Positions 5,040 through 48,451 of a stretch of DNA of 49,157 bases are shown piece by piece. Within the stretch, counting starts at the first letter, position 1. Each line of letters begins with the position of its first letter. The notes beneath the pieces were generated by a model, which saw nothing but the letters and a program-made list of their open reading frames with translations, ran no database searches and was not told the origin of the DNA. The stretch comes from Octopus bimaculoides (Eukaryota), in NCBI RefSeq assembly GCF_001194135.2, contig NC_068989.1, forward strand, positions 60,974,773-61,023,929, given 5' to 3'. A program made the position numbers and the translations under genes.

Positions 5040-5200
5040 CTGAGTGTTTCGTGTATTGGCAATTATCAAACACAAATTTGTCCATTGTTACTCTTTAACT
5101 TCTGACGAAATAACTTCTCATATACAAAATTTTGTCAAAAACGTTAAGAGTAAACTCTGTTCTATGACACATTCTACCAGTATCGGAAGTTTGAAAGCCT
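5040..5200 (+). mobile_element. Diverged fragment of the outer arm of the foldback family found at 32.1-34.4 kb
   Basis: ATGACACATTCTACCAGTATCGGAAGTTTGAAAG (~5164-5197) matches 34301-34334 (ATGACACATTCTACCAGTATCCGAAGTTTGAAAG). The upstream GAAATAACTT...TTTTGT...TAAGAG is also similar. Confidence 0.7.
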
Positions 5201-5412
5201 TTAGTCAAAAAAAAAAAAAAAAAATGAAATAATCTGTACGTATATGCGTGAAAATGAAGTGGATTTACTTTTTCGGAAAAATATTTTGTCCTCAAATTAT
5301 GTGTAAAATATTCCATTTCATAGACTCAGTCATTTAGTAACTTCAATAGATTTATTGTAATGCTTTATGTATCTAACTCGTTAGTGTGCTTAATATCCGA
5401 ATATATATATAT

Positions 5413-7849: not shown

Positions 7850-9740
7850 AGTGAAAGCGAAGGAAGAAGCGATATATTTCGGGCATTTGATACTTCTTGT
7901 CTTTCCAGAAAGAAGGAAACGTTCTACAAACAGCACAGAAGCTGTGCGAAGCAAAGAGCATCAGGTGGTCATCGACGAATGACGAGAATTCAAGAACCTC
8001 CACAGAGCGGCCGCCAGCATTTAAGGCCAGTGTTCTAGGCGTCAGGGTGCCCACATGGCGAAGAACTGCAGGAAGACGAAGCTGGAACCAATTTGCTATC
8101 GGTGGAAACAGGAATGGTATGTCTTCAGCGACGACTGTCTGGAGAACGATCAAACGGGAGCTACTGCTAGAGAGTAAAGGCTTTTCTACAGTCGTTGTCT
8201 ATAGTTTATATCCTAGTTGGAAGGTAACTGTTAAGAGCGCCGTTGCATACGGGCTTCCCAACAAACTTGGTGATTCTGAAAGAGGCTCAGAAGTAGAATG
8301 GGCTCAGTGGTGTAAAGGAAGTTTATTGATGGCAGAGGGATTAGTTGTAGAAGTAGTAGTCAAATGGATGTTGTGATGCGGAGAAAAGACTGAAGCTGCG
8401 AGCAACTGCGATTGACCATGTGATGGATAGAGTTGATGTAGTAATGGGCATGGACATTATCGGACATCTAGAACTTATCACAGTTAGTGAAGGCTGTTTT
8501 ACGACTGGCGGTGTTAGGGCACCATACGCCATAAATCTCCAACAGTAAAGTAATGAGCACGTTGAAATGAAATGTACTGCACATACCATCATAGACAAGA
8601 ATGTTCAAGATGTGTTCGACGGTCAGCAGTGTACATTTGAGTGGCACCGGGAAGGATAACTTAGAGTGTTGAGAAATAAGGTAAGATTTTATCAGTATAA
8701 TCTGAAACGAAATAGTAATTCTGAGAAAAGTGTACAAGATAAAAAAATGTCCAGCAATTAATATACTGATGACACTTTAGTTGTGTCGGCAACGGAGATC
8801 ATAGGTCATATAAAGAAGTTCGGACTAAGCACGTAACTGCCGGAAACGATAGAAGGAACTGTATTGGTACTCAATCTGCGAAAAGACTTCGTAGGCGTAT
8901 TGGTTTCCGGAGAGGAATTTAGATTCCGGAACTGGACACCATCGTGAACAGAAGAAAAATGTTCTCTATGAGTGGGAAAAGAGTATAGCTACGTCAGCAG
9001 ACGACTGGATGTAGCGAGCTGGAGGAAAACAAAGAAAGTCGGATAGAGTACGATGGCTATGATTCAGTAGATCTGAGAGAAGGTAAAACCGTTAGACCCA
9101 GGAAGCGGAAACTGTTATGTGCCAAACTGGAGAACGGGACTATATGGTGTAAAGTAAGCAGCATGGTGATAGGGATAATTCTGGATATAGGAGCTCGAAG
9201 GTGGAGGATATAGCCTGGCTGAGGAAAACGGGTGGTTGCGACCACATCAACGAGGGTGACTTGGATGCAGTGCTGGCCTTGAAAGAAGGACTGTGTACTG
9301 CCAAGATTCGAAAAGATTTGGCCATTGTACTTCGATGGATTTGATTAATGATCACAGATTCTCTCTGAAGTTGAGTATGGTCGTTGTGTTGTTGGAAATG
9401 AATAAGGCCGACGTCCTAACCAGGGTGAAGAAAGCCTGGCTGGAAGTGCTTGGAGATTCAGAGTGAGATAGAGCTGTAGTATGTCGGCTGAGCAACTCGG
9501 AGCTAAGGAGACTGCATATCATGCATCATATGGGAGCGTACAGGACCCTGTACCTAGCTAGGTGAGTCGACTACGACGTTGCCAGATAGAGCATTCAGAA
9601 AGTGGCCGGGAGTTGCGTCACCTGTCAATATTTCGACCGGTTTCTGGGTATGCACGAGGTTAGAAACATCTTATTAGAAAACAACTATAAACTATTGACA
9701 GTAGATGACACGGATATCTCCTGTTTGGAAAGAGTCGACG
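7850..9740 (+). mobile_element. Decayed LTR retrotransposon internal region (Ty3/Gypsy-like domain order gag-PR-RT-RH-IN); LTRs not found
   Basis: Manual translation with stops and frameshifts. Degenerate CCHC knuckles QCSRRQGAHMAKNC and ICYRWKQEWYVFSDDC (~8025-8140). Protease-like RAPLHTGFPTNLV (~8235) and VDVVMGMDII (~8430). RT catalytic-like YTDDTLV (8762). RNase H-like WCKVSSMVIG, VEDIAWLRK..HINEGDLDAVL and NKADVLTRVKKAWL (~9145-9445). Integrase HHCC LHIMHHMGAYRTLYLAR...CVTCQ and LLTVDDT (~9510-9715). Confidence 0.88.
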
Positions 9741-10336: not shown

Positions 10337-10483
<147 letters not shown>

Positions 10484-12020: not shown

Positions 12021-13142
12021 GCGCGCCTGTTTCGCTTATTTTTGTGTGTTTTACTGCATAAATCTCACCAACTGCCTACCCTGAGTAATTACTGTCGGCA
12101 CGTGCCTGATGCATGTATGTATGTATATATAAGTAAATGTATATATGTGTATGTGTGTGTGAGTGTGTGTGTGTATGTGTACGTGCGTGTGTGTGAGTGT
12201 ATATATATATATATACACTTTATTAAAAAGCAGTAAAGATATCACAAAATCTGTTACACAGAGTTTCACGTTCCCGTTTATCGGACAGTTTTGTTTAGAA
12301 TGGAACAAAAATAAGGTTATTATCAAACATATACAATTAGTTTAATGGATACACATTTAAAAATGGTTTAGTTTCATTAGTCCTTTCAACTAACGGTCTT
12401 TACAATGACCGGTTGCATGCGATGAACACAATTCGGTTTAAAATCATCTTATAAAATCGAAGGAAACCTAAAATCAAAAATAGCTTATAAACAAGGACAC
12501 AATCTAAATACCAAGGGTAAATAATTATTTGTAAAATATTAATCAATTAAAACATTGAAGTTATATCTGTTTCAAAAAAATCTGAAGGAACCAGATTTTC
12601 GATGGTCGGATTTTCGAATGTCAACGCTTCTTTCTTTCATTCTTTCTCTCTCTCTCTCTCTCCATATATATATATANNNNNNNNNNNNNNNNNNNNNNNN
12701 NNNNNNNNNNNNNNNNNNNNNNNNNNNNNNNNNNNNNNNNNNNNNNNNNNNNNNNNNNNNNNNNNNNNNNNNNNNNNNNNNNNNNNNNNNNNNNNNNNNN
12801 NNNNNNNNNNNNNNNNNNNNNNNNNNNNNNNNNNNNNNNNNNNNNNNNNNNNNNNNNNNNNNNNNNNNNNNNNNNNNNNNNNNNNNNNNNNNNNNNNNNN
12901 NNNNNNNNNNNNNNNNNNNNNNNNNNNNNNNNNNNNNNNNNNNNNNNNNNNNNNNNNNNNNNNNNNNNNNNNNNNNNNNNNNNNNNNNNNNNNNNNNNNN
13001 NNNNNNNNNNNNNNNNNNNNNNNNNNNNNNNNNNNNNNNNNNNNNNNNNNNNNNNNNNNNNNNNNNNNNNNNNNNNNNNNNNNNNNNNNNNNNNNNNNNN
13101 NNNNNNNNNNNNNNNNNNNNNNNNNNNNNNNNNNNNNNNNNN

Positions 13143-14130: not shown

Positions 14131-15294
14131 TAGATGTGTGTACCTATATATACACACGCATGTTTATTTATACAGACACACACACACACGCACAGACAAA
14201 CCACACACGCACACACATATTAGATACCGATGAATATATGCAGGTGAAAACGATGCACTGAGGAAGTAAATTGCTGATGAATCACTTAGGGCAAACTGAT
14301 CCAAATGAAGAAGATAATTTTCATCTCTAACTGTCAAGAAAAATGATAATGTTATAAACAATTCATGATTAAGGTTTGGAAAGTCATAGACACATACTTA
14401 TAGCTATCATTACACAAACACACGCATGTATATATGTATATATANNNNNNNNNNNNNNNNNNNNNNNNNNNNNNNNNNNNNNNNNNNNNNNNNNNNNNNN
14501 NNNNNNNNNNNNNNNNNNNNNNNNNNNNNNNNNNNNNNNNNNNNNNNNNNNNNNNNNNNNNNNNNNNNNNNNNNNNNNNNNNNNNNNNNNNNNNNNNNNN
14601 NNNNNNNNNNNNNNNNNNNNNNNNNNNNNNNNNNNNNNNNNNNNNNNNNNNNNNNNNNNNNNNNNNNNNNNNNNNNNNNNNNNNNNNNNNNNNNNNNNNN
14701 NNNNNNNNNNNNNNNNNNNNNNNNNNNNNNNNNNNNNNNNNNNNNNNNNNNNNNNNNNNNNNNNNNNNNNNNNNNNNNNNNNNNNNNNNNNNNNNNNNNN
14801 NNNNNNNNNNNNNNNNNNNNNNNNNNNNNNNNNNNNNNNNNNNNNNNNNNNNNNNNNNNNNNNNNNNNNNNNNNNNNNNNNNNNNNNNNNNNNNNNNNNN
14901 NNNNNNNNNNNNNNAAAAATAAAGACAAATTTAATTTGCTGCACTTTTTGAAAAAAAAAATTATAGTTTTAATAGTAAACCCTTCTCTCCCCCCTCTTTG
15001 TTTTACTTTTTTCTCCTCCATTCAAATTTTTAATCCTTTCTCTTCATCTAGGCCATACTTCTTCTTCTCATACTTATCTCTCTTTCATGCTTCTCTCTCT
15101 CTCTCTCTCTCTCTTTCCTTTTCTTTCTTCTTCCTTCGTTTTTTCTTTTTCTCCTCTTCATTCCATCATTCACTTCCTTCCATCTTTCCCCTTCAAATAG
15201 ACCATTATCGCTCTTCCTGGACATAACTTTGTTTCATGTTTTTCCTCTCCTCCTCCCCTCCTCCTCCCCTCGTCTCTCTCACCTCATACTCCCA

Positions 15295-16118: not shown

Positions 16119-16738
16119 TCTCTCTTCCTCTTGCTATCTCTCTCATACACTTTCTCTCAATATTACTGCCTCCCCTGTCCATCTCTCTCTCTCTTCCTTT
16201 CTTTTGAGCTAAACGTTATAATCTTACGAATTACTTACGTTTGTATTTCTTTTCTCTTTTTTTTTTGCAGTTATTATTTAATATATACCTGAAACTCACC
16301 CCGATACACTTGTGGAATTATGTAAGTGCATATTTATTGAAAGTTTTTAACCAATTGTTTGGCATATTTTGATTTACATTGAATACTATTTATCTATTAT
16401 CATGAATAATGCCGCATAAAAGCATAATTATGTTTAATAATGTATTACATAAATCAATGTCATTTTTCTGTACGATTTACGTTTGCATGCTTCAAATGTT
16501 CTCCTTATAAATTGTAAATTTTCATTTCTTTCGACCAGATGTTTGAAATAGATATTGATACATTTACGCATCGTGGAGAATACTATATCAATTGAAAGAG
16601 AAATCGCAACCGTAAAAATGTACACGAACGCGCACACAAGCACACAAGCGCACAGCTATGAATATGTTAGAACATTTACATGCAAATGACTATTAAAAGA
16701 TGTCCGGGTGTCAGTTGGAAATATTCCTACATGCACAA

Positions 16739-16953
16739 GGCGGCAAACTAGTAGAAACATTAGCACGTCGGGCGAAATGCTTAGCAGTATTTCATCTGTC
16801 TTTACGTTCTGAGTTCAAACTCCGCCGAGATCGACTTTATCTTTCATCCTTTCGGGGTCGATAAATTAAATACCAGTTTCGTACTGGGGTCGATGTAATC
16901 GACTGGCCCGCTCCCCCAAAATTTCGGGCCTTGTACCTAGAGTAGAAAAGAAT
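16739..16953 (+). mobile_element. tRNA-derived SINE, near full length (family also at 28.75, 28.97, 35.46, 35.65 and 41.35 kb)
   Basis: GGCGGCAAACTAGTAGAAACATTAGCACG...GAGTTCAAACTCC (B-box-like)...TTTCATCCTTTCGGGGTCGATAAATTAA...GGGCCTTGTACCTAGAGTAGAAAAGAAT; multiple copies align within the window. Confidence 0.9.
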
Positions 16954-26729: not shown

Positions 26730-27491
26730 GAGTTTCCACAAAACTGTTCACCGGGAACTGCACAAAGTCGGATTTCACAGGAGGGTTGCAATCAGAAAAC
26801 TTATAGTGGAGTAAAAACCTACGGAATTGGCCCTAGAGCAGTGGAGGAATGTTATTTTCTCGGACGAGTCACCCTTTAGCTTATTTCCGACCATTGGTGA
26901 GTATACGTGTGGAGAGAGCCAAAAGAAGCATTTGACCCAGACTGCATTCTTCCAACTGTTAAACATGGAGGAGGATCTGTGATGATCTGGAGAGCTATAA
27001 TATGAAAATCCACTGGTCCACTGGTTTGTCTTCATGGCAGAATTAATAGTCAAGACTATTTGTGCATCTTATCTGATCAAATTGATTGTATGCTTGCGGA
27101 ACTGTTTCCGTAGGGCAACGCAATCTTTCAGGATGATAAATCACCAATTCATACAGCTAAAGTTGTTACTGAATGGCACGAAGAACATTCTAATGAAATT
27201 GAACATGTGATCAGGCGACAACAGTCCACAGATCTCAATATTATTGAAAATTTATGGTGCATTTTAGAAAGACAAATAAATAGTCGATATCTTCCACCAT
27301 CATCAATACTAGAACTGGAGACTGTTTTAGCCGAAGAATGGACAAAATTTCCTTTGGAAACAATTCAAACTTTGTGCGAGTTCATACCTCGTAGAATTCA
27401 AGCTGTAATTACTGCCAAAGGCGGTCCTAACCCATATTAAAATAAATTTGTTTGAATTTTAAGGTGCTTCCATTATTTTGTCCAACCCCTG
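26730..27491 (+). mobile_element. Tc1-like DNA transposon, 5'-truncated, DD36E catalytic spacing
   Basis: WRNVIFSDESPF, YVWREPKEAFDPDCILPTVKHGGGSVMIW, FQDDKSPIHTAKVVTEWHEEHSNEIEHVIRRQQSTDLNIIENLW and IPRRIQAVITAKGGPNPY*. One frameshift and two stops. 3' TIR-like end TTTTGTCCAACCCCTG next to (TA)n. Confidence 0.95.
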
Positions 27492-28282
27492 AATATATAT
27501 ACATATATATATATATATATANNNNNNNNNNNNNNNNNNNNNNNNNNNNNNNNNNNNNNNNNNNNNNNNNNNNNNNNNNNNNNNNNNNNNNNNNNNNNNN
27601 NNNNNNNNNNNNNNNNNNNNNNNNNNNNNNNNNNNNNNNNNNNNNNNNNNNNNNNNNNNNNNNNNNNNNNNNNNNNNNNNNNNNNNNNNNNNNNNNNNNN
27701 NNNNNNNNNNNNNNNNNNNNNNNNNNNNNNNNNNNNNNNNNNNNNNNNNNNNNNNNNNNNNNNNNNNNNNNNNNNNNNNNNNNNNNNNNNNNNNNNNNNN
27801 NNNNNNNNNNNNNNNNNNNNNNNNNNNNNNNNNNNNNNNNNNNNNNNNNNNNNNNNNNNNNNNNNNNNNNNNNNNNNNNNNNNNNNNNNNNNNNNNNNNN
27901 NNNNNNNNNNNNNNNNNNNNNNNNNNNNNNNNNNNNNNNNNNNNNNNNNNNNNNNNNNNNNNNNNNNNNNNNNNNNNNNNNNNNNNNNNNNNNNNNNNNN
28001 NNNNNNNNNNNNNNNNNNNNNNNNNNNNNNNNNNNNNNNNNNNNNNNNNNNNNNNNNNNNNNNNNNNNNNNNNNNNNNNNNNNNNNNNNNNNNNNNNNNN
28101 NNNNNNNNNNNNNNNNNNNNNNNNNNNNNNNNNNNNNNNNNNNNNNNNNNNNNNNNNNNNNNNNNNNNNNNNNNNNNNNNNNNNNNNNNNTATATACACA
28201 TATATATTTACACGCCTGTATTTTAAGTGAATATATGTAAAAGCAATCACATATACATATATGTGTGTGCGCATTCTTTTAT

Positions 28283-28751: not shown

Positions 28752-28964
28752 CGGCAAGATGGCGTAAATGTTAGCACGCCTGGCGGAACGCTTAGCGGTA
28801 TTTCGTCTATCTTTACGTTCTGAGTTCAAATTCCGCCGAGGTCAACATTTCTTTTCATCTTTTCGGGGTCGATAAATTAAGTACCAGGTGCGTACTGGGG
28901 TTGATATAATCGACTGGCCCTCTCCCCCCAAATTTAGGGCCTTGTGCCTAGGGTAGAAAAGAAT
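28752..28964 (+). mobile_element. tRNA-derived SINE
   Basis: Aligns end to end with 16739-16953. Confidence 0.9.
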
Positions 28965-28969
28965 AATTT

Positions 28970-29080
28970 ATTTTCCGTTTGGCTTTACGTTCTGAGTTCA
29001 AATTCCGCCATGGTCGACTTTGGCTTTCAACCTTTCGGTATCGATAAATTAAGTAGCTTTTGCATAGAACAGAAAAGAAT
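28970..29080 (+). mobile_element. Partial SINE copy in tandem with the previous one
   Basis: CTTTACGTTCTGAGTTCAAATTCCGCC...GTCGACTTT...TCGATAAATTAAGTA...AGAAAAGAAT. Confidence 0.85.
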
Positions 29081-31326: not shown

Positions 31327-31367
<41 letters not shown>

Positions 31368-32128
31368 CTCTCTCTCTCTATATATATATATACATACACA
31401 CACAAAAACACACATATATATATATATATATGTATACATACACATATGTAAAGAAAGTTAATTGGATAAGATTATTCGGATTACGACGCTAATACTTTCC
31501 CATAGTCTTGTACAATATGCATGTAATCTACTGCATCCAATAGGAAGAATAAGTGTACAAAAGCATGGACTTTCCATTCCAGATATTTGTATAACATCTA
31601 TAGAAACTATTTATGTTTGAGTGGCGATTTCCAGTTGTGTACAGGTAATCTCTGCTGGGAAATGACTACATTTATTTCGGTTAATACCAATCTATGCAAC
31701 AAAGTATGTTCAGAGAAGTAGCCGCAGGATTATATAACTAAGGTATTTCTAATAAAATGGTATTTTCTGATTTAATATTAATGAGTAATATATAATGCAA
31801 TCGATGACTTTATGCTCTTATTCATACATACCTACACACAATCACACAGTCACATACATCCGTTTGTATCAAAGTATACATATATATAATTTATTTGTGG
31901 GTTAACATGTCTACCAATGGTTTCATATTAAGAGATCTTTCGAATTTTTCGAATGCGCCTCACGAAGAATTTTTCGAATGCGCCTACTTGATTGGAATAC
32001 ACAAGGCAACTACGTATGTCTGAACAATATTTCGAATACATATAGAGCGCACGTGAGGTAACTTATATGAATATGTCGAGTGTTATCTCCAGTGTATTAG
32101 CTCCTGGCTTTTGCAGGGAATTGCACTC

Positions 32129-32871
32129 GGATCTTTTTGGTTTGACGGGCAACACTTGTTTTCTTAACGAAACACTTTCAAACTTGGGATACTGGTAGAA
32201 TGTGTCATATAAAACATCTTTTTCTCTTAGCCTTCTTAACAAAGTTGTCGTATTTGTGTAATTTCAACCAGTCACTGACGTCTATTCAGGTGAAAACAAT
32301 TACTGCCGTAGAATGTAAACAACAGGGTCAACAACAACTATCGGCGGTGTTGTTATTTATAACATCATTCGTGCGTTTGGGTTAGGGTTAGGGTTTTAGA
32401 GTTAGGGTTAGGGCATTAGGGTTAGAGTTGGGGTTAGGGTTAGGGTTATGGTTATGAGTTATAGGGTTTTAGGGTTAGGGTTAGGGTTATGAGTGAAGTT
32501 ATGGCAACAATAATCATAACCCTAACCGTAACCCTAAAACTAACTTTAAGTCTAAAACCGGAACCCTAACCCTAAATCCCAAAAGCTAAAACCAGTACAA
32601 ACGCACGAACGATGTTATAAATAACAGTACCGCCGATAGTTGTTGTTGACAAACAAAGGCACTAATTTTGTTCAAGGGAAATAGACGTCAGTGATTGGTT
32701 GAAATTACCGAAATACGACAACTTTTTACATGAAATAACTTCGAATACAAAATTTTTTATCTGTTCTATAACACAAAATATACAAGTATACGAAGTTTGA
32801 AAGTGTTTCGGTACCAAAAACACTACATAAGACATAAATGAAAAATGTTGCCCGTCAAACCAAAAGGATCC
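32129..32871. mobile_element. Non-autonomous foldback DNA transposon, copy A (743 bp), telomere-like core, 8-bp TSD; Merlin-like termini (tentative)
   Basis: 26-bp TIRs GGATCTTTTTGGTTTGACGGGCAACA / TGTTGCCCGTCAAACCAAAAGGATCC; flanks TTGCACTC (32121-32128) and TTGCTCTC (32872-32879); long internal inverted arms; GGGTTA-rich 32379-32490 facing TAACCC-rich 32517-32593. Confidence 0.9.
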
Positions 32872-33289
32872 TTGCTCTCACCTTAGAATCATTAATTTCT
32901 TGAATTAACTAATTGCGAAATCCCTGCAAATCTCATGTAACCTCGGGGAAATCTTATATGTAGTACTCTTTACATGAAACAAATCGTAGTCTTTTTAACC
33001 ATCAAACAAAGAATATCAGCCAATACGGTGTTGAGCACTCATTCTCACTGTCCGAGTCTCTCTCTCATTCTCTNNNNNNNNNNNNNNNNNNNNNNNNNNN
33101 NNNNNNNNNNNNNNNNNNNNNNNNNNNNNNNNNNNNNNNNNNNNNNNNNNNNNNNNNNNNNNNNNNNNNNNNNNNNNNNNNNNNNNNNNNNNNNNNNNNN
33201 NATATATATGTATACGTGTATGTATGTGTGTATGTATGTACGTGTGTGAGTGTGTGTGTGTATCTGTCTCTCTGTCTCTTTCTCTCTCT

Positions 33290-33326
<37 letters not shown>

Positions 33327-33397
33327 TTAATAATTAATTTCATATACTTCATTATAATAGATTTATAAGTCCTAAAATTCATTTCACAATTGCTCAC

Positions 33398-33490
33398 GGG
33401 CATATGGCGGAGTGGTTATGAGCGCTGGCTACTAAGATTCCGAGTTCGATTCCGAACAGTCACCTGGATAATACTGATAACAACAACATC
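33398..33490 (+). mobile_element. Short tRNA-derived SINE head
   Basis: GGGCATATGGCGGAGTGG (A-box-like)...GAGTTCGATTCC (B-box), then an AAT/AAC-rich tail; no complete cloverleaf. Confidence 0.7.
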
Positions 33491-33499
33491 AACGTTTGC

Positions 33500-34380
33500 A
33501 GATCCTTTTGGTTTGACTGGCAACATTTTTCATTTATGTTTTTGGCACCGAAACACTTTCAAACTTCATATACTTGTATATTTTGTGTTATAGAACAAAT
33601 ACAAATGTTTGTATTCGAAGTTATTTCATGTAAAAAGTTGTCGTATTTCAATAATTTCAACCAATCACTAACGTCTATTCAGCTGAATACAGTTTGTGCC
33701 GTAGAATGTAAACAACATATTCTAACGGTGTTATCGGATCTTTTGCCTTTAATAAAATTAGTACCGTTGTTTGTCAACAACAACTATCGGCGGTGTTGTT
33801 ATTTATAACATCATTAGTGCGTTTGGGTTAGGGTTCGGGTTTTAGAGTTATGGTTAGGGTTTTAGGGTTAGAGTTGGGGTTAGGGTTAGGGTTATGGTTA
33901 TGAGTTATAGGGTTTTAGGGTTAGGGTTAGGGTTATGAGTGAGGTTATGGCAAAAATAATCACAAACCTAACCGTAACCCTAAAACTAACTTTAACTCTA
34001 AAACAGGAACCCTAACCCTAAAGCCCTAAAGCTAAAACCAGTACAAACGCACGAACGATGTTATAAATAACAGAACCGCCGATAGTTGTTGTTGACAAAC
34101 AACGGCACTAATTTTATTCAAGGGAAAAGATCCGATAACACCGTTAGAATATGTTGTTTACGTTCTACGGCACTAACTGTATTCAGCTGAATAGACGTCA
34201 TTGATTGGTTGAAATTACCGAAATACGACAACTTTAACATGAAATAACTTATTAAGAACTAATTTTTTGTTAAGAAGGCTAAGAGAAAAAGATGTTTTAT
34301 ATGACACATTCTACCAGTATCCGAAGTTTGAAAGTGTTTTGTTAAGAAAACAAATGTTGCCCGTCAGACCAAAAAGATCC
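33500..34380. mobile_element. Foldback DNA transposon, copy B (881 bp), telomere-like core, 8-bp TSD
   Basis: TIRs AGATCCTTTTGGTTTGACTGGCAACA / TGTTGCCCGTCAGACCAAAAAGATCC; flanks ACGTTTGC (33492-33499) and AAGTTTGC (34381-34388); GGGTTA-rich 33825-33940, TAACCC-rich ~33965-34040. Confidence 0.9.
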
Positions 34381-34540
34381 AAGTTTGCTTCTTGGTATGC
34401 ATTTTGGTGTTAATTACTGATGCTATTTCTTCAGCGTACTATTAACTGCATTTTAAATTCCATCTGAACTAAACACAAGTCCAACCAAAATATTTCGTAC
34501 ACCTGGTGTTAGTATTCTAAAAATAGCCTAAATTCTGACC

Positions 34541-35113
34541 TTTTCAACTCTGCTGGTTAGAAATAACGAAGGAGTTACTGGCCGAAAATGGGTCAAAAGT
34601 CAGCTAATGTATTTCACTACTACTCCACGGGTGAGTGTTTGTATTCGTATTGTGTATCAGGTTACTTAAGGTATGTTGATGATATTATTGTTAAGTGATA
34701 TTATTATCATACCCATAAATACTACTACTACTACTACTACTAATGAGCAATTGGTCTATTCTTTAATATGCTAATTTTATAATTAAATTAATTTTAGGGA
34801 TATCATTAATTTTATTCTCTTATTGTCCTTTTCACTCTTTATAATTAAGTTTCGTTTAGGTAGGAGTTCATATTTAATTAATTAATTTACTTCCTATTGT
34901 TTACTCGATTTCTATTCTAATTTTGGTATTACAGATCATACAGTTATTTAAATCGATTAAACGTGTATTTAGAGTGATGAACACATTACAGCGCACTCAC
35001 GTCCATGGTTTATTAATTCGTATTTTGGTAATTTTTTTCAACACTCTACTATATGTTTTGATCAATTTTCGGCCAGCAACTCCATTATTTTTTCTAACCA
35101 GCAGAGTAGAAAA
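34541..35113. mobile_element. Possible old MITE bounded by ~55-bp imperfect inverted repeats
   Basis: CTCTGCTGGTTAGAAATAACGAAGGAGTTACTGGCCGAAAATG (34548-) vs the reverse complement of CAATTTTCGGCCAGCAACTCCATTATTTTTTCTAACCAGCAGAG (35063-35106). No TSD identified. Confidence 0.45.
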
Positions 35114-35456
35114 AAGAGGACTGAAAAAAAACTTTGTACTGAAATTAAGAGTTTCAATTAAAAGATCCATAGAGTGTGGTGTGTTTTTTTAAAAATATAA
35201 ATGATATATAAGGAATATAATACATTTTGAGGAGATTCACATTCCACGGCCATTTCTAGAGTTCGTGTCCTGGTAGGATAATTAATAAATCTTAGAAACT
35301 ATGTGGACAGTGTTCCCTTCATCAGGAAAGGCATCCACATAAAATCATATTCTTAATACTGTTGATTCTTACAGAATGATGAATATATATGAAACAAAAG
35401 ATTTATCTCCTTACGTATGCAAATGAGTGGAGAGCATGTAATGGTGGGACAAGTAC

Positions 35457-35653
35457 ATTCTTTTCTACTCTAGGCACAAGCCCCAAAATTTTAGGGGAGG
35501 GGGCTAGTCGATTAGATCGACACGAGTACGTAACTGGTACTTAATTTATCGACCGCGAAATGATGAAAGGCAAAGTCGACCTGGGCGGAATTTGAACTCA
35601 GAACATAAGAACAGACGAAACACCGCTAAGCATTTCGCTCGGTGTGCTAACAT
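35457..35653 (-). mobile_element. tRNA-derived SINE lacking its first ~15 nt
   Basis: Reverse complement aligns with 16739-16953. Confidence 0.9.
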
Positions 35654-35872
35654 TTCTTATTTCTTTATTGCCCACAAGGTGCTAAACAAGGACAGACAAA
35701 AGGATAGAGTCGATTGAAGGACCCCATGGCGTAACTGGTACTTAATTTATCGACCCCGAAAGGATGAAAGGCAAAGTCGACCTCGGCGGAATTTGAACTC
35801 AGAACGTAAAGACAGACGAAATACCGCTAGGCATTTCGCCCGGTGTGCTAACGTTTCTTCCAGCTCACCGCC
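35654..35872 (-). mobile_element. SINE of the same head family with a different 3' tail, fused to the previous copy
   Basis: Head GGCGGTGAGCTGGAAGAAACGTTAGCAC... on the minus strand; tail ...TTTGTCTGTCCTTGTTTAGCACCTTGTGGGCAATAAAGAAATAAGAA. Confidence 0.85.
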
Positions 35873-36380
35873 TTTGTGGGTTAAGTATATTAACCTATTG
35901 AAACTTAATTCTGCCTAAACACAGCACAATAAAACTTTCACTCTACTAAGAGCTGAAAGGTTTCAAGTTACAGGCACTCTTCCAAATCATCCCATATGTT
36001 CGGTTCTATAATTTTTCAGAAAAGTGGAATGGAATTTATGATTATATGAGGGAATTACATCAGAGAATATATTCAATGTATTTAAACTATATGATCTAAG
36101 GATAATTTACGATTCCCTTACACATAACCTGCATCTATTCGATGTAGGACTATAAGTGTTGGTGGTGGTGATGAGGCTCCGCAATCATGCACCAGGATAA
36201 AGAATAGTCAGTGCTGCAATCACTTAGGTGGGGGTATATATATACGAGGCGAGAGTTATTGAGCTTTTATACTTAAGGTTAATAAACGAATTTAAATGGG
36301 CTCTATATCTCCTCTTAAAATCAGCAGTGTTGCCCTTATAAACCTTACTTTATCTCCTCTCTCAACTTACAAGTAGTTTC

Positions 36381-36429
<49 letters not shown>

Positions 36430-36593
36430 AGTAAAAATAAATACAAAAAAGGTGGGTTTTTTTGTATGATTGTGTATAGAGGAATATATTATTGTGTATA
36501 GNNNNNNNNNNNNNNNNNNNNNNNNNNNNNNNNNNNNNNNNNNNNNNNNNNNNNNNNNNNNNNNNNNNNNNNNNNNNNNNNNNNNNNNNNNNN

Positions 36594-44689: not shown

Positions 44690-46611
44690 TAGATTAAAAC
44701 AAAAAATTATTGTCTACTACCCAGACAAACTAAATCGAATACGCTGATTCCAAATCCGAACTCAGAATTGCTGTAGCACGTCTGGATTTTGAGTTATGTG
44801 CATAATTGTATATTAATACTGTATTAGTATCAGGAATAGTTAAGTTCAAGGTAAAGAATTATTATAATAGTATATTAGTACTGTATATAGAAAATTTATG
44901 TTCAAGCCCAGTAGTATTATAATAGAATGGTACATAGTATATTTATGTTAAGGAAATACTTTATTTTTTATATGCTCAGTTCAGAAATGTTTGAGACACT
45001 TGTTCTTGCGCTTATGGATCGTGCTGGTCTCCCGTCGAAGAAACCAGAAGTAGTCATCCACCCTGTATGGATTGAACCGACCTTGATATCTCGCTTCCAT
45101 CTCAGATATGTCCTGGTGGATCCTCTCAACATGCTCATCACTAGTGGTACAAAAATTCGTTGGAAAAACATCGAGATGAGAGGGTAAGAATTGCATTTTA
45201 AGGGACATTCGGTATCCCATTATTTCATACACTGGAAACATGTTGTTTATTAAACCAACATAGTTTTATGATTTCCAAGAAATTTCTGTACAACGAACAC
45301 GAATGAATCCCATACCGTCAGCTCAACTGGATTCGGTTTATCTCTGAATTTGCTATCAGACATCAATTATCTGATCTCAGGTCCAATGAAAATGTTTGCT
45401 TTCATTTTTACGTCACTTTTCTCTGCCCCAAATATTACTTTTGGGTATTGGAATCCACAGACATCGTGTGTCATTGCTTTTACGAAGTTTCTCATGAGGC
45501 CGAGTTTGATGTGAAGGCGTGGAAGGAAGAACTTTTGCGGATACATCCTGCACATTGTACCGACCAACTATGCGCTCATCTCTTTTAGGCCAGTCTTTTA
45601 CAGTATTATGATTGCTGTCGTCACGGTTCTTTCAAACACACAAGAAACACATATTTTTGGTATATCTCAGCTGCAGTCCTAGGAGCGGGGAGGGACATCA
45701 CATTTAAATCACCACAAATATTCCACTTATGAACTGAGTAATTAACTCCTTTCAGAATGAGTTCCATCGATTCATAAGTTTCTTCCATATCACAAACAAG
45801 AGCCACAGGAATGTAACAACACAACTTTGGCGCTAACCTTACTCTAGTCTATAAACAAGCTCTATTCATTAGCCACATGCACGTGTCCTAGTTTTTGCAC
45901 GAGTGCATTATCGTCAAAACAGAAACAAGCATTATTTTTCTTCCTCAAAAAAGACAGATAATCCATCATGGCGAGAACGGAAAATGGAAATTTTCGTACC
46001 TTGCTGTAGGAGGTTCCGCTGTTGTAGACTAGATCCCAAAACTTCTGCCTTCACCTTTGACAATGCTAGGTATCTTACCAAATCGTTTAAATCTTCTTGA
46101 TTAAAGAAGCGAAGCTTATTTTTCTTAGAATCAACTACGTACTCTTCGTCGATAGGAGAATCAGCGAGGTTCATCGTGCGACGTGTATGCTGTTCACGCG
46201 GAGCAAATTTTCCTCAGACATAAAATAACTGCTCCTATTCATGATCTAACTGTTAGATTCTAACACAATGAACAGAATTAAAGCAGTAATTACGCAGAGT
46301 GAGAGATGCACATACCACACTTGACGGCAGCGCAAACGATACTGAGAGTTATCTAGAATAAACTGACGTATTTGGCGCTTGCATACGATACGGCAGCGCC
46401 ATCTATTGCTAAACTAAATAATGAACTTTCTCACCGCTTCTTTAATTAAGACTGCTTTAGTTGCAGCAAATTTTATAATACAGTCTATATTCGCATAACT
46501 CAATGTTCTGTCGTGCTAGAACAATTCTGGAAACGGATTCGGAATCAGCCTCCTCGAGTTAGTCTAAAATACATGCTTTTACCCAAGTAGCAAAATCTTC
46601 GTTGTCCAATG
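44690..46611 (-). mobile_element. Decayed DNA transposon, Chapaev3-like (CMC group, tentative); left boundary approximate
   Basis: Minus ORFs FNQEDLNDLVRYLALSKVKAEVLGS (45932-46174), IPVALVCDMEETYESMELIL..HKWNICGDL (45621-45824), FLPRLHIKLGLMRNFVKAM..IFIGPEIR (45367-45567) and MSLKMQFLPSHLDVFP..SDEHVERIHQDISEMEARYQG (44981-45241). Subterminal inverted similarity GCTGATTCC(A/G)AATCCG..CAGAATTG..TAGCACG..TTGAGTTATG at ~44743-44798 and ~46495-46550. Terminus CATTGGAC (CAC-like) next to TTA. Confidence 0.8.
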
Positions 46612-47760: not shown

Positions 47761-48451
47761 NNNNNNNNNNNNNNNNNNNNNNNNNNNNNNNNNNNNNNNN
47801 NNNNNNNNNNNNNNNNNNNNNNNNNNNNNNNNNNNNNNNNNNNNNNNNNNNNNNNNNNNNNNNNNNNNNNNNNNNNNNNNNNNNNNNNNNNNNNNNNNNN
47901 NNNNNNNNNNNNNNNNNNNNNNNNNNNNNNNNNNNNNNNNNNNNNNNNNNNNNNNNNNNNNNNNNNNNNNNNNNNNNNNNNNNNNNNNNNNNNNNNNNNN
48001 NNNNNNNNNNNNNNNNNNNNNNNNNNNNNNNNNNNNNNNNNNNNNNNNNNNNNNNNNNNNNNNNNNNNNNNNNNNNNNNNNNNNNNNNNNNNNNNNNNNN
48101 NNNNNNNNNNNNNNNNNNNNNNNNNNNNNNNNNNNNNNNNNNNNNNNNNNNNNNNNNNNNNNNNNNNNNNNNNNNNNNNNNNNNNNNNNNNNNNNNNNNN
48201 NNNNNNNNNNNNNNNNNNNNNNNNNNNNNNNNNNNNNNNNNNNNNNNNNNNNNNNNNNNNNNNNNNNNNNNNNNNNNNNNNNNNNNNNNNNNNNNNNNNN
48301 NNNNNNNNNNNNNNNNNNNNNNNNNNNNNNNNNNNNNNNNNNNNNNNNNNNNNNNNNNNNNNNNNNNNNNNNNNNNNNNNNNNNNNNNNNNNNNNNNNNN
48401 NNNNNNNNNNNNNNNNNNNNNNNNNNNNNNNNNNNNNNNNNNNNNNNNNNN

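Follow-up and report, generated by a model that had tools for sequence, protein, structure and literature searches.

Two neighbouring foldback transposon copies from Octopus bimaculoides carry the same centre in opposite orientation relative to their ends

In a 49,157-nt stretch of Octopus bimaculoides DNA (contig NC_068989.1, positions 60,974,773 to 61,023,929; hereafter the window), two neighbouring copies of a foldback transposon, which we call A and B, share one pair of unlike ends (X and Y) and one asymmetric centre, and the two ends are swapped relative to that centre. The swap is recorded by 23 substitution sites in the outer parts of the arms versus 19 in the inner parts, and the description of A and B as inversion isomers, made in an initial annotation of this stretch, is thereby borne out. 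At least one arm-to-arm exchange separates the A and B lineages. Coordinates of all features are collected in Table 1.

Two separate insertions with swapped ends

The 26-bp terminal repeat GGATCTTTTTGGTTTGACGGGCAACA, whose terminus reads GGATC(T/C)TTTTGG, had been singled out in the initial annotation as the probe for further copies. Searched against the window, it gave four matches with three mismatches or fewer (at 32129, at 32871 on the minus strand, at 33500 and at 34380 on the minus strand), where chance would give 0; the matches form two inward-facing pairs, which bound A and B. Each copy has its own 8-bp target-site duplication, the two halves agreeing at 7 of 8 positions; a match at least this good at a fixed place has a chance of 7e-4 per copy. 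Beyond the duplications, the flanks of A and B are unrelated. Because each copy has a duplication of its own and the flanks are unrelated, A and B are separate insertions, in agreement with the earlier proposal.

Inverted repeats span almost all of A and of B. Folded as single-stranded DNA, copy A forms a hairpin of almost its full length (-208.8 kcal/mol, z -24 versus shuffles) and copy B one long hairpin (-303.8 kcal/mol, z -56 versus shuffles). The longest open reading frame (ORF) with a start codon in the element has 90 codons' worth of product (90 aa), runs along an arm and has no homologue in the protein collection. A and B are non-coding foldback (hairpin) copies of a DNA transposon that resembles miniature inverted-repeat transposable elements.

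Read from its outer end, an arm has the terminus, then a diverged outer segment and a conserved mid segment, followed by one or two subrepeats, a short inner segment and a degenerate GGGTTA array. This innermost array reads GGGTTA on one side and TAACCC on the other, and in the left arm of A it was matched by Tandem Repeats Finder at 32375-32489. The subrepeats, u1 and u2, are ∼65 nt long and 75% alike; B has two per arm and A one per arm. By pattern search, the loop or spacer ATGAGTGA(A/G)GTTATGGCAA lies at 32489 in A and at 33935 in B. It is therefore present in both copies, as had been reported, and so are the inner-arm motifs first quoted with it, GGTGTTGTT/CATCATT on the left and GGT(A/T)CTGTT/CATCGTT on the right.

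Relative to the right arm of B, the left arm of A has a 33-nt deletion between 32240 and 32241. Its mid-arm lacks alignment columns 255-307 and contains, in columns where all four arms are present, no site of either diagnostic type defined below. In the right arm of A, columns 213-276 are missing at a deletion junction between 32681 and 32682. Both arms of B contain, at the start of u2, the terminus-like motif GGATCTTTT, which equals the first 9 nt of the element terminus and has been lost from both arms of A; it is possibly a transposase site inside the element, or else a terminus no longer in use.

Pairwise comparison related the ends of the two copies crosswise. The left outer arm of A was 96% identical to the reverse complement of the right arm of B (32125-32243 versus 34266-34384), and the right outer arm of A was 94% identical to the reverse complement of the left arm of B (32680-32822 versus 33537-33679), whereas the outer arms of one and the same copy were only ∼72–79% alike. 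The core behaved differently: 32327-32626 and 33773-34072 were 96% identical in direct orientation over 300 nt and only 77–79% identical when one was inverted.

To compare all arms at once, we aligned the four of them, each from terminus to loop, and classified substitution columns only where all four arms were present. In this alignment, cognate outer arms were 94% identical and non-cognate ones 69–76%; cognate inner arms were 94–96% identical and non-cognate ones 76–78%. Columns 1-170 held 23 ends-type sites, which group A-left with B-right and A-right with B-left, and 0 side-type sites. Columns 331-475 held 19 side-type sites, which group A-left with B-left and A-right with B-right, and 0 ends-type sites. 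Neither type occurred in columns 171-330. This partition between outer and inner sites is significant (Fisher p = 2.2e-12) and no site contradicts it. Indel columns concur, in that differences of 6 nt and 25 nt between the GGGTTA side and the TAACCC side were grouped by side. Since cognate arms are far more alike than non-cognate arms, the master element evidently already had unlike ends, X and Y, together with an asymmetric centre.

Divergence between A and B is even along the element, at 4–6%, with 15 mismatches in 250 positions of the outer arms versus 12 in 259 of the inner arms (p = 0.56). This evenness argues that the centres are neither a collapsed consensus nor the product of recent conversion between neighbours.

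Site of the switch and origin of the reversed centre

Among the four-arm columns, the last ends-type difference lies before column 170 and the first side-type difference at column 331. Between them, three-way comparisons add four positions, any of which could be a private mutation of one arm: column 230 is ends-consistent (A-left equals B-right, unlike B-left), and columns 280, 285 and 298 (33745, 33750 and 33763 in B-left) are side-consistent (A-right equals B-right, unlike B-left). On this alignment, the switch can be placed firmly within columns 168-280, corresponding to 33634-33745 and 34124-34236 in B, and it likely falls within the narrower interval of columns 230-280. There is a single switch in each arm and no mosaic.

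The zone in which the switch falls is also distinctive in composition. Its 65 four-arm columns contain 0 ancestral arm-to-arm differences, while such differences make up 17–20% of the flanking parts; the probability of this by chance is ∼2.5e-6. The absence of differences suggests that the ancestral arms were identical over ∼110–160 nt and that the exchange occurred there. This mid-arm tract was either conserved for function or homogenised when the exchange happened. The earlier proposal of a recombination inside the shared inverted arms is supported in this respect: the switch lies in the mid-arm tract that the arms have in common, where an exchange between them would put it.

We therefore favour, at about even odds, a single homology-dependent exchange between left and right arm in the lineage of one copy, with A and B as old, independent insertions. 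An exchange between the left and the right arm would reverse everything internal to the exchange point relative to the ends, which here would comprise the inner arms, the GGGTTA and TAACCC arrays and the loop; only an exchange of left arm with right arm reverses the centre. The exchange site would be the mid-arm tract, the only stretch over which the arms would have been identical. Homology-dependent exchange needs an identical tract, and the location of the switch in such a tract favours homologous exchange. Two routes would be equally possible. In one, the inverted arms of a single element crossed over within the molecule; in the other, a break at the centre of the hairpin was repaired by copying a family member that had aligned by way of the opposite arm. 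We infer that the event was rare, and that it took place either before insertion or in place.

Two further observations speak for this explanation. The termini and the target duplications (7/8) are intact in both copies and only the interior is rearranged. In addition, hairpin-forming foldback elements have been reported to be break-prone and recombinogenic (PMC2775673; PMC3573991), so the near-perfect hairpins of A and B count in favour of an exchange. A precedent exists in palindrome P6 of the human Y chromosome, where inversion through arm-to-arm crossover was detected by a phase change of arm-specific variants (PMC3723533).

Several points weigh against the favoured explanation. Two full copies are too few to fix the direction, the timing or the count of events. 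There is some circularity in placing the switch in a tract devoid of diagnostic sites. Exact inverted matches between the arms now reach no more than 22 nt (A) and 37 nt (B); such arms have diverged too far for efficient homologous recombination, so that the event, unless it made do with little homology, must be old. Copy A has a deletion in each arm within the switch interval, and these two deletions would fit a one-step non-homologous inversion that needs no extra events. Finally, the assembly is a gapped draft built of short contigs, with 13 gaps of N in the window and copy A in a contig of 1,747 bp.

A one-step origin of this kind is possible but unlikely. It would have inverted the inner 355 bp (32327-32681) without homology in the lineage of A, with B keeping the ancestral full-length arrangement. 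Two breaks might have been rejoined, or replication might have switched template twice; A's deletions would then be junction scars. Its appeal is that 1 event covers the flip and both deletions, versus 3 under homologous exchange. The two inner deletions do overlap and both lie in the switch interval (columns 255-307 on the left, 213-276 on the right), and the sequence shows a 2-nt GG filler at the left junction, between 32326 and 32327, and 2–3 nt of microhomology (GAA) at the right junction. However, the 33-nt deletion of A at 32240 lies outside the interval, and A has thus lost sequence independently of the flip. Each of the two inner deletions removes approximately one ∼65-nt subrepeat (u1 or u2), a common loss in arms that bear repeats, and their overlap is not statistically striking, because the switch interval occupies ∼1/3 of an arm.

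Somewhat less probable again is an assembly chimera in one copy, in which an anchored outer arm was joined through the family-wide mid-arm to reads from an oppositely oriented copy. The gapped state of the draft and the small contig that holds A leave room for such an error, and the mid-arm tract, common to all four arms, would be a natural site for a wrong turn if the family is abundant. Against this, exact inverted sequence within a copy does not exceed 22 nt in A or 37 nt in B, so that the copy by itself is unambiguous for 100-nt reads, and copy-specific single differences occur inside the switch zone, no more than 50 nt apart in B-left. The centres differ by 4% and have their own mutations at the density of the outer arms, unlike a consensus fill. 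The assembly gap between the copies lies inside neither: A is wholly in the contig 31327-33073 and B wholly in the contig 33202-36501. The relation of ends to centre is therefore internal to each contig, and the gap affects only the distance between A and B and their mutual orientation.

The initial annotation had gone further and read the two isomers as products of a flip-flop. We considered this idea in two forms. In one, the family would flip its centre repeatedly, as hairpin-tip breaks or excision gaps are repaired from family members through mid-arm sequence that suits either arm, leaving orientation random; we regard this as improbable. If it were true, both isomers would have stayed mobile because their 26-bp termini are interchangeable, the short, highly conserved tract in the arms would be accounted for, and foldback transposons would naturally report which template break repair chooses. 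In the other form, which we hold to be slightly less probable still, flipping would be recurrent and ongoing, with both isoforms common (near 50:50) and single loci possibly mixed. The configuration does differ in 2 of 2 copies, the geometry permits flipping, and repair of a hairpin-centre break from a family member could pick either alignment equally.

The arms themselves, though, do not look like those of a system in continual exchange. All 42 of 42 ancestral arm differences are kept in both copies, within-copy homogenisation of the arms is seen at 0 substitution sites, and there is exactly one switch per arm without mosaic. The arms are 72–78% identical outside the mid tract, versus >99.9% where arm recombination is active (PMC3723533), and no exact inverted match between them is now longer than those given above. 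In P6, 56 conversions were counted versus 3 crossovers (>10:1), and the arms were kept >99.9% identical (PMC3723533). One rare, old event suffices, and the evidence leans against an ongoing flip-flop; two copies cannot show that a family flips back and forth. A flip-flop of the family, as originally proposed, is thus not supported. The likeness then drawn to herpesvirus segments and invertible cassettes stands for the geometry, an invertible segment between inverted repeats with both orientations present, and fails for interconversion, since the two orientations come from separate genomic copies and nothing points to interconversion at any one locus.

Two other proposals fare much worse. It is very improbable that the inner unit bounded in B by the motif GGATCTTTT (33736-33744 and 34125-34133) is a smaller mobile unit, excised and reinserted in reverse by transposase. 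The identity of the 9-nt motif to the element terminus would suit this idea, as would its position at columns 271-279, within the switch interval and just before the first side-consistent column, 280. The sequences flanking the unit, however, are inverted rather than direct, so there is no inner target duplication; the motif may simply open a further diverged subrepeat of the arm, and it is missing from both arms of A. Nested insertion of an inner element was rejected on the same ground, the inner flanks being inverted and not direct.

We assign almost no probability to Galileo-like ectopic recombination between A and B that inverted the segment between them and left both copies chimeric. The copies are 628 bp apart (the gap length being an estimate) and antiparallel by their ends, and chimeric foldback copies of such origin are documented (PMC2775673; PMC3573991). 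Such recombination would exchange target duplications, as seen for Galileo copies at Drosophila inversion breakpoints (PMC2775673), whereas A and B each keep their own matching pair. Traced through, single as well as double exchanges between the two copies only swap material and exchange target duplications. This origin was rejected because the duplications are unexchanged and because two copies with the same layout cannot change that layout internally by homologous exchange with each other. An unequal exchange of u1 with u2 of the opposite arm was likewise rejected, as it predicts 1 + 3 units and A has 1 + 1, and a larger inverted duplication spanning A and B was rejected because the flanks past the target duplications are unrelated.

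Comparison with known foldback elements and invertible segments

In organisation, A and B resemble the Drosophila FB elements, Galileo/Newton/Kepler and Tetris. Two inverted arms take up nearly the whole element and leave a short middle, subrepeats in the arms vary in number between copies, the short copies have no coding capacity, target duplications measure 7–10 bp, and copies differ strongly in structure. Unlike those elements, with which they share no sequence similarity, A and B have a terminus that begins with GGATC and a centre that is a degenerate telomere-like GGGTTA/TAACCC palindrome. Structural variability between foldback copies, and chimeras ascribed to recombination, have been described (PMC3573991; PMC4079207; PMC2775673). 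The Galileo chimeras on record differ from A and B in that they join arms from several subfamilies or have swapped their target duplications. In the literature searched, which did not cover older subscription papers, among them those on FB and on sea-urchin foldback elements, changes described for foldback elements were deletion derivatives, arm extension and subfamily chimeras; we found there neither a description of this family nor a foldback centre turned round between unlike ends with the target duplications left intact.

As to superfamily, an 8-bp target duplication fits hAT or P. The usual hAT terminal repeat starts with CAG or TAG, and the terminus of A and B, GGATC(T/C)TTTTGG, is not of this type. 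We also take the GGATC terminus to be unlike the start of P or Galileo elements. No P-like coding sequence was recognised in the window and no autonomous partner element was found in it, the sole transposase remnant there being Tc1-like, which misfits an 8-bp duplication.

Exchange between inverted repeats is a textbook mechanism, and the favoured exchange would be an ordinary mechanism in a new setting. In herpesvirus segments, the yeast 2-micron plasmid and the plastid inverted repeat, such segments interconvert continually within one molecule population, in some cases by dedicated recombinases. A and B resemble these systems, and also the small inversions associated with plastid hairpins, in that a segment flanked by inverted repeats exists in both orientations; they are unlike the flip-flop systems in being two fixed genomic copies with no evidence of interconversion at a locus. 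The closest parallel in geometry and in manner of detection, by a phase change of arm variants at one point, is with the P6 palindrome and the IR3 repeats of the human Y chromosome (PMC3723533). The scale differs, being hundreds of bases here versus >100 kb in the Y palindromes, and so does the state of the arms: those of the palindromes are >99.9% identical with frequent conversion, whereas the arms of A and B are 72–78% identical outside a short tract and no conversion was seen.

If the assembly is right, A and B provide a cleanly phased case of a foldback centre reversed between its own arms, with termini and target duplications intact, and add a type of structural change to the known deletions, arm expansions and subfamily chimeras of foldback elements. 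They also call for caution in annotation. The orientation called for a foldback copy depends on the part used for calling it, and building a consensus can merge two isomers into a false palindrome. Beyond a curiosity, the observation would gain weight only if flipping proved recurrent in a census of the whole genome.

Further copies, feature coordinates and surroundings of the locus

Apart from the two full copies, the window contains one relic arm of the same or a sister family (Table 1), without a partner arm or centre. It mixes diagnostic states of both ends: X-diagnostic bases and part of an X-only insertion are combined with a Y-only segment near the terminus. This mixture suggests that a longer ancestral arm gave rise to X and Y by different deletions, and that the family predates A and B.

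Searches beyond the window, in collections that do not include this genome, yielded chance matches only. In metagenome contigs, the 19-mer invariant in all four arms hit 12 loci, in each of which the match was confined to the 19-mer, and a degenerate 20-mer from the terminus matched by chance at 5 places in bacterial metagenome-assembled genomes and nowhere in viral contigs. Two contigs of the European Nucleotide Archive (L018 and L019; 32.8 kb), reached through the Tc1-like ORF of the window, share with it only the Tc1-like element and low-complexity DNA. They contain neither a foldback copy nor the SINE-like repeat of the window (SINE, short interspersed nuclear element; see below), and therefore come from another organism.

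Table 1. Positions of the foldback copies, their parts and associated features in the window
Feature	Position	Strand	Basis or remark
Relic third outer arm, older, same or sister family	5085..5245	+	blastn match, alignment; ∼77% identical
Copy A target-site duplication, left, TTGCACTC	32121..32128	.	7/8 match to 32872-32879
Copy A, foldback element of 743 bp, X end - centre - Y end	32129..32871	+	terminal repeat matches, hairpin fold
A-left outer arm, type X, cognate of B-right	32129..32240	+	93.9–96% to B-right reverse complement, 69% to B-left
A-left mid-arm (switch zone), ending at deletion junction, GG filler at 32325-32326	32241..32326	+	alignment
A-left inner arm (L type) with long degenerate GGGTTA array	32327..32488	+	96.4% to B-left inner, 77% to B-right inner
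Loop/spacer of A, ATGAGTGAAGTTATGGCAA	32489..32507	+	pattern search
A-right inner arm (R type) with short TAACCC array	32508..32681	+	94.2% to B-right inner
A-right mid-arm and outer arm, type Y, cognate of B-left	32682..32871	+	94% to B-left reverse complement
Copy A target-site duplication, right, TTGCTCTC	32872..32879	.	sequence reading
Assembly gap between A and B, inside neither	33074..33201	.	flanked by CT-rich and AT/GT microsatellites
Copy B target-site duplication, left, ACGTTTGC	33492..33499	.	7/8 match to 34381-34388
Copy B, foldback element of 881 bp, Y end - centre - X end	33500..34380	+	terminal repeat matches, hairpin fold
B-left outer arm, type Y	33500..33633	+	alignments, site patterns
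B-left switch interval, with subrepeat u1 and internal motif GGATCTTTT at 33736-33744	33634..33745	+	site patterns
B-left inner arm: rest of u2, L-type segment, long GGGTTA array	33746..33934	+	alignment, site patterns
Loop/spacer of B, ATGAGTGAGGTTATGGCAA	33935..33953	+	pattern search
B-right inner arm (R type) with short TAACCC array	33954..34123	+	site patterns
B-right switch interval, with internal motif AAAAGATCC at 34125-34133	34124..34236	+	site patterns
B-right outer arm, type X	34237..34380	+	alignments, site patterns
Copy B target-site duplication, right, AAGTTTGC	34381..34388	.	sequence reading

The 13 gaps of N in the window include 12677-13142, 14445-14914, 27522-28190 and 47761-48451, and most of those inspected adjoin a microsatellite. 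Dozens of long di-, tri- and tetranucleotide arrays are present, for example (ATT)49 at 10337-10483. Because contigs are short, any structural claim on the window rests on a fragmented draft assembly.

Just upstream of B, at 33400-33470 on the plus strand, lies a tRNA-like stretch, GGCGGAGTGGTTATGAGCGCTGGCTACTAAGATTCCGAGTTCGATTCCGAACAG, with no other copy in the window. It was not called by ARAGORN or Rfam, neither of which had any match in the window; the stretch is possibly what remains of a tRNA gene, or a SINE head that served as B's insertion site.

The Tc1-like transposase remnant (26815-27437, plus strand) is decayed, matches DDE_3 below the Pfam cut-off (E 5.9e-6) and runs into the gap at 27522; the best protein relatives of its ORF at 27114-27437 are at most 75% identical. 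Another ORF, at 44984-45265, was first taken for a transposon protein and has no homologue and no Pfam match. A GC-richer block (0.44) at 8300-9500 contains ORFs that by eye recall protease and integrase motifs of retroelements; they had no Pfam match at E <= 0.01, and the block is possibly a decayed LTR (long terminal repeat) retroelement.

The SINE-like repeat is ∼200 bp long and occurs in four copies that are 85–88% identical, at 35457-35658, 35708-35875, 16737-16953 (minus strand) and 28766-29055 (minus strand), two of the four standing in tandem. Its core (…AACTGGTACTTAATTTATCGACCCCGAAAGGATGAAAGGCAAAGTCGACC…) resembles the SINE abundant in octopus genomes, a likeness that would fit the AT-rich, microsatellite-rich sequence of the window and its TTAGGG-type arrays.

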